A stretch of 64,000 bases of DNA from Chrysemys picta bellii. Lineage: Eukaryota. The notes below the pieces were generated by a model. The model was given only the letters and a program-made list of their open reading frames with translations, did no database searches and was not told the origin of the DNA. The stretch lies in assembly GCF_011386835.1 (NCBI RefSeq), contig NC_088803.1, forward strand, positions 54,746,001 to 54,810,000, read 5' to 3'. Of the stretch, positions 19,879 to 28,258 are shown in pieces. The position numbers and the translations under genes are program-made. The number at the start of each line of letters is the position of its first letter. Positions within the stretch are counted from its first letter, which is position 1.

Positions 19879-22800
19879 ATGGCCTCGCAGAACGCGGACC
19901 CCGCCGCCCGGCCCAGCGCCGCCCGCAAGGGGACCGAGCCCGGCAGCAGCGCGGCCCGCGGCTCCGTGGGGAAGCGGTGAGCGGGCGGGAGGGTCCCGTC
20001 CGGGCCGGTCCGGTCCGGTCCGGTCCGGTCCGGCACCGGGCGGGCCGGGGAGCTGCGGGCCGGTGGGTTGGGGCGGACCGGCGGGAGAGGCCGGGCGGGA
20101 GGGACCGGCCAGTGGGTTGGGTGGACCGGCGGGAGGGGAGCTGGGGACCGGCGGGCGGACCGGCGGGAGGGACCGGGCCGGGCGGACCGACCGGGGAGCT
20201 GCGGGCCGCGCCCCCTGACCCTGTCCCCTCTGTCCCGCAGGCTGCAGCAGGAGCTGATGGCGCTGATGGTGAGTCGGGCCGCCGGGCGCTGGGGCCGGGC
20301 CGGGCCGGGGGATGCTCCCTGGGGCCGGGGCGGGTTGGCCCCGGGCCCGCCCTGGGGGCTGCGGCGGGGGGTGGCCGGGCCGGGCGCTCGCTCCTAACCC
20401 GTGTCCCGTCCCCGCTCAGATGGCCGGCGACAAAGGGATCTCCGCCTTCCCCGAGTCGGACAATCTCTTCCGCTGGATCGGGACCATCGACGGTGCCGCT
20501 GGGACGGTGAGCGAGGGGCCGAGCTGGGCTGGGGGGACTGGCGAGCCCGCGGCTCTGGGGAGCAGGGGGGCACGGAGGGGTCAGGGTCCGCCCGGCTAAC
20601 GCCTCCCTGCCTGTCTCCCCCAGGTGTACGAGGAGCTGAGGTATAAGCTCTCCCTGGAGTTCCCCGACGGGTATCCCTACAACGCCCCCACCGTCAAGTT
20701 CCTCACCCCCTGCTACCACCCCAACGTGGACACGCAGGGCAACATCTGCTTGGACATCCTCAAGGACAAGTGGTCGGCGCTCTACGACGTCCGGACGATC
20801 CTGCTGTCCATTCAGAGCCTGCTGGGAGGTGAGGCTGCCTGGGCATCGCCCCCCGGTGTCCTGCGGCTCTGAGTTCCTGGGCTCCCCTTTCCCATCCCAG
20901 CCTCCTCCCGCTCCCCTTGCTTGCCCAAAGCATGTCCTTGCCTCCGAGTGTGCACCGTGATCAGCCCATCACGCTGACCAGTATTGCTTCATCATTCCCT
21001 TGTGCTCCTCCATCTGCTGTCTCATCCGATACTGGGACCGTCACGGCAGCTCTCTGGGGCAGGGACGGAGCTTTTGTTAGGTTTGTACAAGGCCTGGTAC
21101 GATTGCGGCTTTGTCCGTGCCCGGGGTTCCTAGGTGCTACCATGATACAAATAGAATAACTGCTACAGCGGACAGCGATCAGGCTGGGGTGTGAGCCAGG
21201 GGAGGAAGGCATCATGGCGGGAAGCATGTGACCAGACGCTAAACAACCAGTGGGGCCAGGGGACGATGGAAGGGCCAAAGGAGCACTCAAGGAGATGAGG
21301 CCATTGCGGAGAAACTAAATGAATTCTTTGCATCAGTCTTCATGGCTGCGGATGTGAGGGAGATTCCCAAACCTGAGCCATTCTTTTTAGGTGACAGATC
21401 TGAGGAACTGTCCCAGATTGAGGTGTCATTAGAGGAGGTTTTGGAACAAATTGATAAACTAAATAGTAATAAGTCACCAGGACCAGATGGTATCACCCAA
21501 GAGTTCTGAAGGAACTCAGATGTGAAATTGCAGAACTACTAACTGTAGTCTGTAACCTATCACTTAAATCAACTGCTGTACCAAATGACTGGCAGATAGC
21601 TAATGTGACACCAATTTTTTAAAAGGATTCCTGAGGTGATCCCAGCAATTACAGGCCTGTAAGCCTGACTTCAGTACTGGGCAAACTGGTTGAAACTATA
21701 ATAAAGAACAATATTGCCAGACATATAGATGAACCTAATTTGTTGAGGAAAAGTCAACATGGTTTTAGTAAAGGGAAATCATGCCTCATCAATCTACTAG
21801 AATTCTTTGAGGGGGTCAACAAGCATGTGGACCAAGGGGATCCACTGAATATAGTGTACTTAGGTGTTCAGAAAGCCTTTGACAAGGTCCCTCAAAGGGT
21901 CTTACGCAAAGTAAGCTGCCATGGGATAAGAGGGAAGGTCCTCTCATGGACTGGTAACTGTTTAAAAGACAGGAAACAAAGGGTAGGAATAAATGGTCAG
22001 TTTTCAGAATGGAGAGAGGTAAATGGTGGTGTCCCCCAGGGGTCTGTACTGGGCCCAGTCCTATTCAACATATTCATAAATGATCTGGAAAAAGGGGTAA
22101 ACAGGTGGCAAAATTTGCAGATGATACAAAATTACTAAAGATCATTAAGTCCCAGGCAGACTGCAAAGAGCTACAAAAGGATCTCACAAAACTGGGTGAC
22201 TGGGCAACAAAATGGCAGATGAAGTTTAATGTTGATAAATGCAAAGTAATGCACATTGGAAAACATAATCCCAACTATACATATAAAATGATGGGGTTTA
22301 AATTAGCGGTTACCACTCAAGAAAGAGATCTTGGTGTCATTGTGGATAGTTCTCTGAAAATATCCACTCAATGTGCAGCGGCAGTCAAAAAATGAACAGA
22401 ATGCTGGGAATAATTAAGAAAGGGATAGATAATAGGACAGAAAATATCATGTTGTCTCTATATAAATCCATGGTACACCCACATCTTAAATACTGTGTGC
22501 AGATGTGGTTGCCCCATCTTTAAAAGATGTATTGGAATTGGAAAAGGTTCAGAAAAGGGCAACAAAAATGATTAGGGGTGTGGAAGGGTTTCCATATGAG
22601 GAGAGATTAATAAGACTAGCATTTTTCAGCTTGGAAAAGAGACAGCTAAAGGGAGATCTGATTGAGGTCTATAAAATCATGACTGGTGTAGAGAAAGTAG
22701 ACAACACAAGAACTAAGGGTCACCAAATGAAATTAATAGGTAGCAGGTTTAAAACAAATAAAAGGAAGTATTTCTTCACACAACCTGTGGAACTCCTTGC

Positions 22801-23675
22801 CAGAGGATGTTGTGAAGGCCAAGACTGTAACAGGGTTCAAAAAAGAACTAGATAAATTCACGGATGGTAGGTCCATCAATGGCTATTAGCCAGGATGGGC
22901 AGGGATGGTGTTCCTAGCCTCTGTTTGCCAGAAGCTGGGAATGGGCAACAGGGGATGGATCACTTGGTGATTACCTGTTCTGTTCATTCCCTCTGGGGCA
23001 CCTGGCATTGGCCACTGTCAGAAGACAGCATGCTGGGCTAGATGGACCCTCGGTCCTACCCAGTAGGGCCGTTCTTATGGAGTGGGGTGAGCGTGTTGCT
23101 GTGTAAGAAACAGGAAGCCTACTCTGTCCTCACACTGACCCTCCCGTCTCCCAATCCTCAGAGCCGAACGTTGAGAGCCCCCTGAACACACATGCGGCCG
23201 AACTCTGGAAGAACCAAGCAGGTGAGTGTCTCCCGTTGGGGTCCGTTAGGCACCGTGGCTCTGGGTTACTCCTGGCTGAGCTGCCTACAGGCCCAGCGCA
23301 GGGTTACAGCTGCCCTCCAGTGCCTGGGCATGGAGAGGAGGACAGCTGCCTTCAGACCTGTTTGGGTAACAATCCCCGTCCCCAGGGACGGTACCTGATT
23401 GGGGGGCCTGGGACTTGGGCACTCACTCGGCCTGGCTTCGTTGCCGAGCTCTGGCCCAGTAGAGGAGGGTGTCTTCCTTCCTAGCCTGTCCCAGGGTGAC
23501 TTCCTCTCGCCAGCTGCAGGAGCTGGAATAGCCTGAGTGGAGAGAGCCCCGGGTGAACCCCCTGTGCTCCTCTGCGAAGTCTGCCCCTCTCCAACAGCTC
23601 TCCCCTCCCTCCCCAGCCTTCAAGAAATACCTGCAGGAAACGTACGCAAAGCAGGCCAAGAGCCAGGAGACCTGA
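19879..23675 (+). CDS. UBE2C: Ubiquitin-conjugating enzyme E2 C, 6 exons, 178 aa
   Basis: Exons 19879-19976, 20241-20268, 20420-20506, 20624-20828, 23162-23221, 23617-23675. MASQNADP...[10 protein letters not shown], catalytic [15 protein letters not shown], ends [24 protein letters not shown] at 23815-23820. Confidence 0.98.
21250..23079 (+). mobile_element. ~1.8-kb 5'-truncated CR1 LINE in UBE2C intron 4
   Basis: RT motifs ([18 protein letters not shown]; [20 protein letters not shown]; KFADDTKL) with frameshifts and stops; ends GTTCTTATG. Confidence 0.93.
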
Positions 23676-24492
23676 TGCCTGTCCAAGCCGCAGCTCTTTG
23701 TCTGTCTGTCCCTATCTGCTCTCTGGAACTGTCCTCTGACTGCTCTGTACAGGACTCTGTATCATACGCTGGTTTTAAATTAATTCTGCAGGTGGAACCC
23801 ACGGTTACTGTATAAATAAACTCTCGTTTTTTAACTTTGGTTTTGCACAGATCATGGTACTTGCATTGGGCTGGGTGGTGTCTTGGGCCGCGGTGACCCC
23901 TTCTGGCCGGGCTGCCATGCACAGCAAGAACCGAGCCCAGGGCACTTGGAGCCAAGAGGGCCTGGCCTTGCCTTGAGGCAGCTCTCGGCTGCTGATCTGC
24001 CACCGCCTGGGGCCAGTCACCCCAGCAGATGGGGATTCAAGCACAGATCTCTGTGACCTCCACGCACCTCCATCACCACCACCACTGTGGGTGTGGAAAT
24101 GGTTCCCTGGGGCAGGGGCACTTTGTAGGCTCTACAGGGAACGAACACAAGTGGGAGAACGACATTTATTAATCCCCCAGCAGTCTCCTCTGCCACGACT
24201 CCCTCCAGTGCCGGGGGGGTGGGGGCTCTTTGCCACCCTTCCCTTGGCCTGCAGTGCCCCCCCACCTTGCCACCGCTATCCCACATGCTCCCTGAGCTGA
24301 GTGCCCTGCTGGCAGGGGAGCCCTCAGCCAACCTGTTCCTACCCCAAGCCAGAGCACCTCTTCCTGCTTCTCCCAGCTGGGCGCCATGTGCTCAAAGAAA
24401 CTTGCCTTTCTGGGCTGCTGTGGCCAAGGGTCCCTGTTCTGGGTTTTCTCCTGGGGGGAGCAAAGTCCTGCCCCTTTGCAGGGGGGCGCTAG

Positions 24493-26009
24493 TCATGACA
24501 ATGTGCAGCAGAGTGCAGGCCAGCCCTGACGCTGCCCGCAGCACCCTGGGCCACCTGCCACCTCTGCAGCCTGTCTCTCGCTGCACGACCCCTCTGCCTC
24601 ACAGGCCAAGCTGCTGCCCGGCCCGGCCTCTTCTGTGGCCTCCACTGTCCAGACAGGGACATTGACTCTGGTCTCCATCTCCAGCAGCATGGTCCCCACA
24701 CGCTCAATCTGCTCCTCCAGGCTAGGGGCAGCACCCAGCTGCTCCGTGCTCCTGGCGCCCTTGCGGCTTGGCCTCCTCCACGGCTTGTGCCCTCCATCTG
24801 TGGCCTTCCCCGTGAGGCCAGTGCTCACCAGCGGCCCCCCCCGCCCCTGCAGGGGGAAGAGTTGGAGGAGATGATGGGCCCTGTGCAGGTCTTGGTGGAA
24901 GAGCTCCAGAGCGGACAGGGACAGCACCCACAGCCTCTCCAGCTCCTGCCGCTCCTCGGGGCTGGCCAGCGGCTGCCTCAGCCCGGCTAGGAGCACGTTC
25001 CGCAGCCCTGCAGGGAGACGTGCATCCAGTGTTACCAGCCCGGGGAGGGAAGCTAGCAGAGCACAGCACTGGGCGGGCTCGAGTGGAAGGTAATGGAACA
25101 GCTGCGCTAGCAATGAGCCAGCTGGGATGAAACAGCCTGGTGACGGAGGGCCAAACTGTGAGCCGCGCGCCAGCCGTGGGCTTGTCCAGCAGGCTTGCCC
25201 AAGACATCTGCCTGGTGTATTCTCACCCAGGGGTGGGGTCCCATGCACACCCTTGCAGGTGCAGAACTCTGCCCCCAGCGGCCAGGTCTAATGGGGCGAG
25301 GGGCAGTGGGAGGAGATTAAATATTAACTGTCCCAAGGGGTAGCAAGCAACCCCCTCCCCCCATGGCTCGCAGAGGGATGAGCCCTGGATCGATGCCCCA
25401 CCTGAGCTCAAGTAGCTCCCTTACCTGGCAATGCGAGCGGGCTGTTACTCGCCATGGGGACAAGGCACTGGCGAGGGCTGCCAGCATTCGCTCTCAGAAC
25501 TGCCCATTACTGCCGTGTGTCAGGCCTGGCTCTGGGCAGAAGACGCAGGACAGGAGGGAGGCGGACATGGGGAGCGGGCTCCCATTCGAATGCAGAGGAA
25601 AGCGGGAGCTGGCCGCGCGCGGGCAGGGTGGTCTGTGCGCTGTTAGACCAGCCCAGGCTGTGAGCGCTGTAGCCCCAAGCCTGGGGAAGAGCAGGTGCCC
25701 AGCGCACAGCCCCTGTGCAGTGAGCACCCAGGGGCTGGACTGAAGGGCATTGGCTGTGGGGCAGCCCCAGGCAGGGCAGCACAGCATCATCTCCCCCCCT
25801 CTCTAGCCCTGTTCCTGGCAATAACAGGCTGGGCTCAGTTCCTTACCCTTGCTGAGCTCGTGCACCTCCTTGCTCCGCTCCTGCAGCTCCTCCCGCAGCC
25901 GGGGTGAGTCAGCCGTGCCCCCCAGCTGCAGCGCCAGCTGTCTGTGCCACACAATGACTTTGCTCAGGGAGGTGTGGGCGGCTGCACACTCTCCTCTCAC
26001 CTCCCCCAT
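24493..26009 (-). CDS. RGS9-binding protein (R9AP)-family paralog, 2 coding exons, ~225 aa
   Basis: Exon 1 26009-25847 (MGEVRGECAAAHTSLSKVIVWHRQLALQLGGTADSPRLREELQERSKEVHELSK, donor GTAAGG). Exon 2 25007-24493 (acceptor CCTGCAG; ELERLWV, LFPLQ..PLVSTG, EMETRVNVPVWTVEA; ends LCCTLS*). These match R9AP motifs (VGGSADSQNLRQEL, EFERLWV, MEMKVNVPRWTVQA). The ATG at 26009 has strong Kozak context; weaker in-frame ATGs lie at 26036 and 26087. Minus-strand AATAAA at 24165-24170. Confidence 0.85.
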
Positions 26010-28258
26010 GTTGTGGGAGTCAGGCACATGGGACATCTGCCAGGGCAGGGACCCTGCTGCTGGGTGTTCCCTCTCCAGCGCCTGCATGCAGCCCAGGGCC
26101 TCAGCTGTGCGTGGCTTGCTCCAGTGCCTGCTGGTGGATGGGGAAGCGGCACCAGCCAGTGCGTTGGGGTGCACAGCAGGCTGGTGCTGGGGCCTGCTGT
26201 CGAGGTGGGGTCCTCCACACCTGGGTGTAGCCGGTGGGCTGTGCCACAAAGGGCTCTCACACCCACTTGGGGCCTCGTGCAGGCTGGGGCCTGCTGCTGT
26301 CCGTGATGCAGAACCCCTCTTATCAGCTCCAGCTGTTCTCCCAGAGGCAGGCACCAAGTGGGAAGGCGGCCTGGGCCGAAGCTGTCAGTGGAGTGACCTC
26401 CCCGGGGCAGCAGTCTGGAGGAGCCGGACTCTCCCACACGCCAGCACCGCCTCCCTGCTCCAGTCCTGTCACCGCAATGCTATGCAGTTCTCTTGGTGGG
26501 AACGGGCCTGAGCCGGCGCTGCCAGCCCTGCAAACTGGCTGTCGGAGCCCCTCGGCGTCCCGGTCCCGGGAGCGGCTCCCTCGCTCTCCTCTCCGCTGCT
26601 GGAGTCTCCGCTAGCCGGGCCGAGCCTGAGGCAGATTGTTAGGGGCGGGCTCTGGGGTCCCAGGGGAGCTGCGGCAGGTCTAGGCAGGCGCTGCCTCGCT
26701 ATTTTCCGTGGGTGGGTTTAACCCATGAGGCCCGGGGGGGAGTCCTGGCCTGTGGGGATCCCAAAGTTGCATCTTCCCCCTAGCTGGAAATGTGTCTCCG
26801 GGTGCCATGGCCTGTGGTTGTGGCTCCGGGCTCCCCGGTTGTGGGATCCCACCTGCTGACGGGTCCGGGGGGCAGATCTATGGGCAGCAGGGGGTGATGA
26901 CAGGCCCAGGGTCTGCCCCGGTCTGGCTGTCTCCCTCCCCACCTGAAATGATTACGGGGCTGTTTGAAAGTGATCCTCTAGCATGACCCCCCCGGGGGGG
27001 GGGGCAGTCCCCCGCTGGCGCTGCCTGGGCCACGGCCGTGGATGTGGCCCTGCATCCCAGGGGCTGGCCCAGGGCCCATTGGGGTGGGGCCGGCAGCCTG
27101 AGCTGTGATGGCTCTGGTGACTGGAGCAGAAGCGGTTCCTGGAAGGGAGAGCAGAGGGGGCCCTGACATGGGGTCACCATGCAGCCTCTCTGCTACGCCA
27201 GGCTGGTGATGGCTGCCAAGGTCCCTGGCTTGGAGGGGCTCAGTGTGACTCAGCCTCCCCAGAATAAGAGCACCCCCATATTCCCAGCCCCTGTGGCCTG
27301 TGGGCCAGCCCTGCCCTGAGGTAAAGGGATTCCTCAGTGGTGCCCTGGTCCCGGTCCCAGGCCCTGCCCCTCCAGCTGACCCTGCAACCCCACAAGGGAG
27401 GGCCTGGGTTGCTGCTTGGTTCCTGCACCACAGCCCCTGTGAGGTGCAGAGAGCTGCCAGCCAGCCAGCGAGCTCCTCCCCTGCGGAAAATCTGAGCTCA
27501 CTGCTGGCCTGGTCCCCAGAGGCCATGTGGGAAAGGCAGCCCAGAGCCCAGAGTGCAGCCCCCTGGCCCCACCCAGTCGGCATCAGCCCAGCTGAGACCC
27601 ATGCCTGCCTGGCACTATCCCAGGCTGTGAGCATGGGGGCAGGAGCTGCTCAGCCGTAGATGGCCCTGCTTGCTGAGTGGGGCACCAGGGGCTGCTCTGA
27701 GCAGTTACCAAGTGCTGTGAGCAGGGCTGGACCGGCCACATGTGGTCATACCCACCCCAGGCCCTGGCAACACTCCCCCCCTTCCCTGCCCCAACTCCAG
27801 TGACATGCGCCGAGGCCCGGGCACCTCCTTCAGTGTCATGCCCCTGGGAGGACCTCACATCCCCCCACCCGCTTCCTGCAGACTCCTCCCTGGTTGCCTG
27901 TGCTAGGGTCTCTGGCCAGAGGGTCCCCCACCCGCCCCACTCCCCATATCAGAGCCAGCTAGAATCCAGGCTCCGGCAGGTTCAAACTTTTGACCCTTTT
28001 AATGAGGCTTCAATACTATACACAGCGTTTACAGACGGGGGAAAGGCTCTTTCCAGCCGTGTGAGAGGTGAGTCCACAGCCCACCAGCCCCGGGGCGCGG
28101 CAACAAGGGAGCAGTGGAACTGTACAAAGCGAGCACTTCACGGGGCAGGGGAGGCCAGGCCCTCTGGCTGGAGGCTGCTCCCAGAGTGCGCTTGGCTTTG
28201 CTGTGCGGAGATGGAGCAGGGCTGGAAGCAGGGCCTGGCTCGCAGGAATGTCGGTCCT

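Follow-up and report, generated by a model that had tools for sequence, protein, structure and literature searches.

The R9AP-like protein of the turtle Chrysemys picta bellii is likely to have exchanged the transmembrane anchor of R9AP for a farnesyl plus palmitoyl anchor, with geranylgeranyl as the predicted prenyl group in birds. The gene was found on the minus strand of the window, i.e. the whole stretch of 64,000 nucleotides that was analyzed. Because transmembrane tails are present in R9AP, R9AP-B, the lamprey and hagfish proteins and the invertebrate relatives and none is present here, a prenyl plus palmitoyl anchor was taken as the best reading of the C-terminal end, and lipids probably keep the protein at the membrane. 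Neither the gene nor its family is new; what is new is the prediction, well supported, of a lipid anchor. No prenylation motif or lipid anchor was described for any R9AP-like protein in the literature searched, and Lamb et al. 2018 discussed CaaX boxes and prenylation for GRKs only (PMC5795056).

Gene structure, transcription and family assignment

The R9AP-like gene was modeled with two coding exons. Its features, in window coordinates, are as follows.

25847..26009, minus strand: coding exon 1, with the ATG at 26009-26007 and the end ...aag g/gtaagg
25008..25846, minus strand: the one coding intron, of phase 1 and 839 nt, whose position is shared by the turtle, alligator, sparrow and frog orthologues
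24493..25007, minus strand: coding exon 2, starting after ctccctgcag and including the TGA stop at 24495-24493
24150..24492, minus strand: 3' UTR, with AATAAA at 24170-24165 and RNA contig ends at 24153-24257

The joined coding sequence of 678 nt is open and yields a protein of 225 aa with the C-terminus ...GPGCCGQRQGWPALCCTLS, directly followed by the stop. Exon 2 codes for helices 2 and 3 of the bundle, the linker, the SNARE-like helix (...MLLEMETRVNVPVWTVEA...) and the Cys-rich tail; minus-strand translation of 24493-25005 gave ...EVAGGPGCCGQRQGWPALCCTLS and then the TGA stop. The preliminary description had given the same end, with CTLS followed by a stop, but had placed it at 24493-24545. 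This interval holds the stop, the last 16 codons and part of the next one, and the 19 residues quoted plus the stop occupy 24552-24493. Upstream of the MGEV start, two in-frame ATGs (26087-26085 and 26036-26034, minus strand) would extend the protein to 251 or 234 aa (+26 or +9 residues), and the first of them (26087) is the start used by the NCBI turtle models. RNA contigs extend to 26131-26287 and therefore contain both ATGs. The conserved part of the protein begins only near ...GECAAAH.

RNA evidence came from assembled Logan contigs of four runs (X1, X3, X4 and X7), placed on 23300-26400. X7 is a run from a related species. The contigs of X1, X4 and X7, which represent three studies and two species, share a joint between 25006 and 25846 across 839 nt, bounded by CT..AC on the plus strand and hence GT..AG on the minus strand. 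The contigs therefore derive from RNA, and the gene is spliced as modeled. Intron sequence was present in X1, so that this run contains pre-mRNA or DNA.

The fold was predicted with AlphaFold2 from a 34-sequence alignment headed by the Terrapene protein, which is 94% identical to the turtle product. Helices were obtained at residues 2-27, 36-65, 71-104 and 151-168 with pLDDT >90; no helix was predicted past residue 175, and residues 185-225 had pLDDT <50. With E from 5e-3 and target TM-scores up to 0.7, Foldseek gave as best PDB matches the syntaxins Sso2, Sso1, syntaxin-12 (Habc) and syntaxin-1. A sequence profile run against the PDB returned the Habc domain of syntaxin-12 at E=6.7e-4. AlphaFold2 and Foldseek together gave the three-helix (Habc-like) bundle plus SNARE-like helix of the R9AP/R7BP family, the architecture described for R9AP and R7BP (PMC5795056). 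In Pfam no family scored above threshold, Syntaxin_2 staying below it at E=0.12-0.25; matches to Gasdermin_C and BAR_3 were discarded as noise. The core of R9AP binds R7-family RGS/Gbeta5 complexes, and the R9AP-like paralogue may bind R7 RGS-Gbeta5 as well.

In a word search with exon 2, 83 turtle (74-92% identity), crocodilian and bird proteins were returned under the name "regulator of G-protein signaling 9-binding protein-like". Frogs were added by a profile search, and an exhaustive HMMER search led to 177 representatives, for 30 of which names were obtained. The word searches for R9AP-like proteins returned no squamate orthologue. With the clade profile, R9AP, R9AP-B, and lamprey and hagfish R9AP were found at E 1e-33 to 1e-43, the R9AP of caecilian and desman at around 1e-41 to 1e-42; R7BP was not among the 150 best profile matches.

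In the maximum-likelihood tree the window sequence was placed among turtles, inside an R9AP-like clade (SH-aLRT 99-100, 24-25 rows) that also comprises crocodilians, birds, frogs, degu, coelacanth, sturgeon, bonytongue, zebrafish zgc:109913, seahorse, skate and shark. R9AP, R9AP-B, lamprey and hagfish R9AP and the invertebrate homologues fall outside this clade, all relatives with a transmembrane helix among them, and the tree needs only 3 changes of anchor type. Lamb et al. 2018 distinguished three paralogues, with no coding intron in R9AP, two in R9AP-B and one in R9AP-like (PMC5795056). The turtle gene is an orthologue of the third of these, the vertebrate R9AP-like (RGS9BP-like) paralogue already named in that study, so the name R9AP-like, under which it was first described here, could be kept. 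The same copy is called RGS9BP3 in a 2025 frog preprint, where its function is stated as unknown.

Three turtles, alligator and sparrow share the order TNNC2 (EF-hand), R9AP-like, convergent UBE2C (UQ_con), to which DNTTIP1 is added as the following gene in the alligator and the sparrow; a frog R9AP-like gene likewise has UBE2C on its downstream side. The Natator locus was collinear with positions 28500-21935 of the window. Exon 2 is under moderate purifying selection, with dN/dS values of 0.22-0.51 among turtles and 0.46 against alligator.

The C-terminal end and its conservation

As previously noted, the R9AP-like protein has no hydrophobic helix in its last 50 residues. The 19-residue Kyte-Doolittle maximum was 0.65 for the whole 225-aa product and 0.21 for the last 50 residues, compared with 2.83-2.94 for the tails of three R9AP proteins, and AlphaFold2 predicted coil in this region. 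The C-terminal transmembrane helix of R9AP proper is thus missing by hydropathy and by the model. The tail is acidic, lacks a polybasic stretch and carries three elements of interest.

24496..24507, minus strand: CaaX box CTLS, predicted farnesylation site (C 24507-24505, T 24504-24502, L 24501-24499, S 24498-24496)
24508..24510, minus strand: Cys -5, adjoining the CaaX Cys, predicted palmitoylation site (CCaaX); Cys -5 is present in 86/95 of the sauropsid and frog C-x-x-x models and in shark and skate too
24538..24543, minus strand: upstream CC pair (-16/-15, in GPGCCG), candidate palmitoylation sites; GCC is found at equal distance in other turtles and in frogs

The turtle end thus has Cys at -4, Leu at a2 and Ser at X, with cysteines at -5, -15 and -16 near the CaaX Cys as a possible second signal. 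Residue a1 is Thr, not aliphatic; a1 is the least constrained position of the CaaX box. Between the window and the X7 species, a G>A change at 24503 makes CCTLS read CCILS, the end of the Terrapene protein P0001 as well, and keeps the CaaX box. An in-frame deletion of 3 bases (24531) affects the linker that separates the CC pair from the box. In this comparison indels are tolerated in the tail upstream of the box and not inside it.

Retention of the terminal Cys in orthologues had been set in advance as a test of the proposed anchor. Among the sauropsid and frog models, 95/120 end in C-x-x-x, and the Cys is also kept in coelacanth, sturgeon, bonytongue, zebrafish, shark and skate. Turtle ends are CCTLS (7), CCILS, CCTAS and CCRLC, crocodilian ends CCTVS and CCTIS, and frog ends CMVS. 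Birds, paleognaths included, end in CCRVL (36), CCGVL (23) or relatives of these; emu ends in CTVL, X is L in 79 models, and the one bird exception is CCGVP. Among fish, coelacanth ends in CVIS, zebrafish in CLLS, shark in CCIIS, skate in CCTIA, paddlefish in CLTS or CLMS and seahorse in CAWS, with unusual last residues in sturgeon (CLMP) and bonytongue (CMLH).

A C-terminal alignment of diverse lineages from shark to bird had Cys -4 in 19/19, and the other positions among the last 25 reached at most 10/19. Of the 19 lineages, 16 have V, L, I or M at position -2; nine end in S, five in L and one in A, and at least one extra Cys occurs within 16 residues in every lineage. The chance rate of Cys at -4 is roughly 1 protein in 50. 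Since Cys -4 is invariant while no other tail position exceeds 10/19, a chance C-x-x-x end was ruled out, and recognition by a CaaX prenyltransferase is the sole explanation we can offer for the fixed distance of this Cys to the C-terminus.

The last residue selects the enzyme, S/A/M/Q/C leading to FTase and L/F/I/M/V to GGTase-I (PMC11304957, PMC5795056). GGTase-I canonically accepts Cx[V/I/L][L/F/I/M/V], and in yeast a strong gel shift from prenylation was seen with CTVL (PMC11304957). The change from S to L coincides with the bird stem and predicts a switch from farnesyl to geranylgeranyl on this lineage. In the supplements of the yeast screens of 8000 CXXX motifs with FTase and GGTase-I, no per-motif values were found for CTLS, CILS, CTVS, CMVS, CVIS, CRVL or CGVL; CTVL and CVLL occur there as plasmid names only.

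Cys -4 is missing within the clade in degu (P0133), in the pipefishes Nerophis and Stigmatopora and in the clingfish Gouania (P0149, P0155 and P0157 are the fish). The pipefishes and the clingfish retain CC..C clusters, which would suit a tail that is S-palmitoylated only and in which the C-x-x-x spacing is incidental. R7BP provides a precedent, as it ends in CCLVSS, is palmitoylated and is insensitive to prenylation inhibitors (PMC2171691). Such a tail is nevertheless an unlikely account of the turtle protein, because Cys stands exactly at -4 in all lineages aligned while other tail positions vary, position -2 is predominantly aliphatic, and the last residue is mostly S, L or A, switching cleanly from S to L on the bird stem. 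Degu is the only placental mammal with the R9AP-like paralogue; its CaaX end is lost and its branch is long (1.31).

A different use of the terminal cysteines, in metal binding, a disulfide or redox chemistry, or a functionless end of a drifting paralogue, was also considered. The very Cys- and His-rich tails of fish, e.g. zebrafish ...CCHHHNCKVGCLLCLLS, and the moderate constraint on a gene that has gone from nearly all mammals (PMC5795056) point in this direction. It is, however, very improbable: across the range from shark to bird the reading frame has stayed intact, the gene is transcribed, spliced and evolves at dN/dS below 1, crocodilians and birds have no His/Cys cluster and keep the CC of CCaaX alone, and a metal site would not require an exact four-residue distance from the end.

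The farnesyl plus palmitoyl anchor originally proposed from CTLS, the adjacent Cys and the upstream CC pair therewith stands as a prediction supported at the sequence level. According to this prediction, the syntaxin-like R9AP core (three-helix bundle and SNARE-like helix) would be kept, and a linker of roughly 40 residues, acidic, disordered and terminating in CCTLS, would take the place of the tail-anchor helix. Cys -4 would be prenylated by a cytosolic enzyme, for which farnesyltransferase is proposed because the last residue is Ser, as geranylgeranyltransferase-I is for the bird Leu. The last three residues would then probably be cleaved and the new end methylated at the ER. S-palmitoylation of Cys -5 and the upstream CC pair would add the second membrane signal, which the acidic tail cannot give. 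The outcome would be a peripheral, potentially reversible membrane anchor for an RGS complex. Trafficking by PDE6D, as suggested in the preliminary description, is like the reversibility a conjecture.

Hydrophobic tails and the antisense strand of UBE2C

The remaining 25 of the 120 models, mostly from Ensembl/UniRef, end otherwise than in C-x-x-x, and several have hydrophobic tails such as ...LLALGLLVVCLPHILLVC. Their origin was traced to the convergent neighbor.

23614..23675, plus strand: last coding exon of UBE2C, with the poly(A) site at 23834

The minus strand of the window at 23675-23616, antisense to this exon, has a hydrophobic reading that is the source of false tails, and models of different species use all three antisense frames. 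Other alternative tails were, among the tblastn matches listed, antisense to the penultimate exon, an intron and the 3' UTR of UBE2C. At the sparrow locus the plus strand inside annotated UBE2C yields ...HVCSEGSRCLALQTVAGSAGGR with a stop, and a 20-residue tail, i.e. the tails of models P0053 and P0099. As the alternative tails are antisense UBE2C sequence, their conservation is due to UBE2C. The poly(A) sites of the convergent genes lie about 315 bp apart (UBE2C at 23834, plus strand; R9AP-like at ~24150, minus strand), and this proximity of the 3' ends accounts for merged gene models. The divergent tails look like annotation artefacts. One X1 contig (23614-24212) passes the UBE2C poly(A) site into the 3' end of the R9AP-like gene.

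At least 14 public Ensembl/UniRef models of birds and turtles have UBE2C-antisense C-termini (window 23154-23966, minus strand; L002:9119-9400), including P0009, P0011, P0013-15, P0024, P0035, P0048, P0053, P0077, P0099, P0114 and P0118. A practical result is thus a set of public R9AP-like models with false C-termini from the opposite strand of UBE2C. A downstream transmembrane exon, the other finding named beforehand as refuting the anchor, was rejected as a candidate, the alternative tails lying on antisense UBE2C in the tblastn matches listed and at the sparrow locus.

The hydrophobic tails of several database models (P0035, P0048, P0077 and P0099) could also be taken at face value, with a tail-anchored isoform, spliced to a downstream hydrophobic exon, as the functional product. 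The sparrow antisense frame, which stops straight after ...ILLVG, would agree with this. We consider such an isoform extremely unlikely as the functional product. The tails are antisense to the last UBE2C exon and stem from three different frames among species, and the turtle frame runs on without a stop and is therefore not a tail anchor. The RNA contigs also speak against it. They cross the stop codon unbroken in X1 (24194-25008), X3 (24218-24804), X4 (24257-24506) and X7 (24461-24720, with a further contig at 24153-24300), run on to the AATAAA signal, and include no splice joint at this locus other than that of the coding intron in any of the four turtle RNA runs. Assembled contigs drop rare isoforms, so that a major alternative 3' exon is excluded and a minor one is not. 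When the minus strand was scanned for hydropathy between 24700 and 15000, nothing hydrophobic turned up except LINE-derived stretches and the antisense of the last UBE2C exon.

The LINE-derived stretches were located as well. An ORF run with CR1-type LINE reverse-transcriptase sequence occupies 21740-22855 of the window on the plus strand, upstream of the last two UBE2C exons and presumably inside an intron of that gene; read in antisense, it accounts for the other hydrophobic stretches of the minus-strand scan.

Comparison with R9AP, R7BP and dually lipidated proteins

In photoreceptors and neurons, how fast G-protein signaling is shut off depends on the place at which R7-RGS/Gbeta5 complexes are anchored. 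The known anchors are of two kinds, a transmembrane helix in R9AP and a palmitoylated dicysteine in R7BP. R9AP (RGS9BP), the tail-anchored RGS9-1/Gbeta5L anchor of photoreceptors, is homologous to the R9AP-like protein over the whole core. Both have a ...VN.P.WTVEA motif ahead of the anchor and the same predicted bundle plus SNARE-like helix. The R9AP tail, however, ends in a transmembrane helix (...LLAAVALAVCVAKLS), whereas the R9AP-like protein ends in CCTLS and has no hydrophobic segment. R9AP has no coding intron and R9AP-like has one, and R9AP-like lies at a different locus (TNNC2-UBE2C).

R7BP is palmitoylated on both cysteines, and its localization is reversible, controlled by palmitoylation and reliant on a polybasic stretch (PMC2171691). 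It is not prenylated because four residues follow the last Cys of CCLVSS (PMC2171691), so the distinction drawn in the preliminary description between the R9AP-like end, transmembrane R9AP and palmitoylated, non-prenylated R7BP holds. R7BP and the R9AP-like protein are both relatives of R9AP without a transmembrane helix and with a dicysteine near the end, the lipid anchor being a prediction for the latter. They differ in that three residues follow the Cys in the R9AP-like protein, which makes a true CaaX box, and four in R7BP, and in that the R9AP-like tail is acidic and R7BP relies on a polybasic stretch.

The true CCaaX end and the acidic tail without a polybasic stretch resemble two-signal anchors of the H-Ras type. 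H-Ras combines a prenylated CaaX Cys with neighboring Cys residues that are palmitoylated. Other dually lipidated CCaaX proteins are RhoB (...CCKVL), TC10 and paralemmin (...CCSIM), and the bird R9AP-like ends HCCRVL resemble the end of RhoB. In fold and function all of these are unrelated to the R9AP-like protein, and the likeness, confined to the anchors, is a predicted one.

If the prediction is true, most non-mammalian vertebrates have retained a third, prenyl-based anchor over some 450 million years, and the least-studied paralogue gains a testable biochemical identity. The protein would then be expected to be sensitive to farnesyl- and geranylgeranyltransferase inhibitors and to prenyl-binding chaperones. 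It would form an evolutionary bridge between R9AP and R7BP, and the farnesyl-to-geranylgeranyl switch in birds would be flagged.

A wider scenario can be put forward, although we regard it as doubtful. Transmembrane and CaaX anchors might be an old interchangeable pair whose ends were split among vertebrate paralogues, the helix going to R9AP and R9AP-B and the CaaX box to R9AP-like. The CCLVSS of R7BP would then be a CCaaX end with one additional residue, by which prenylation was lost, and the bird S-to-L change would be a farnesyl-to-geranylgeranyl transition of the kind seen between rod and cone GRKs.

A homologue from the annelid Owenia fusiformis (P0176, P0276 and P0277), on which this scenario draws, has annotated isoforms that are identical for 333 residues. 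According to the annotated models, one form has the CaaX box CTIL at its end (...RSRLCTIL) and the other a polybasic stretch with a transmembrane helix; alternative 3' ends may switch the anchor type in this species.
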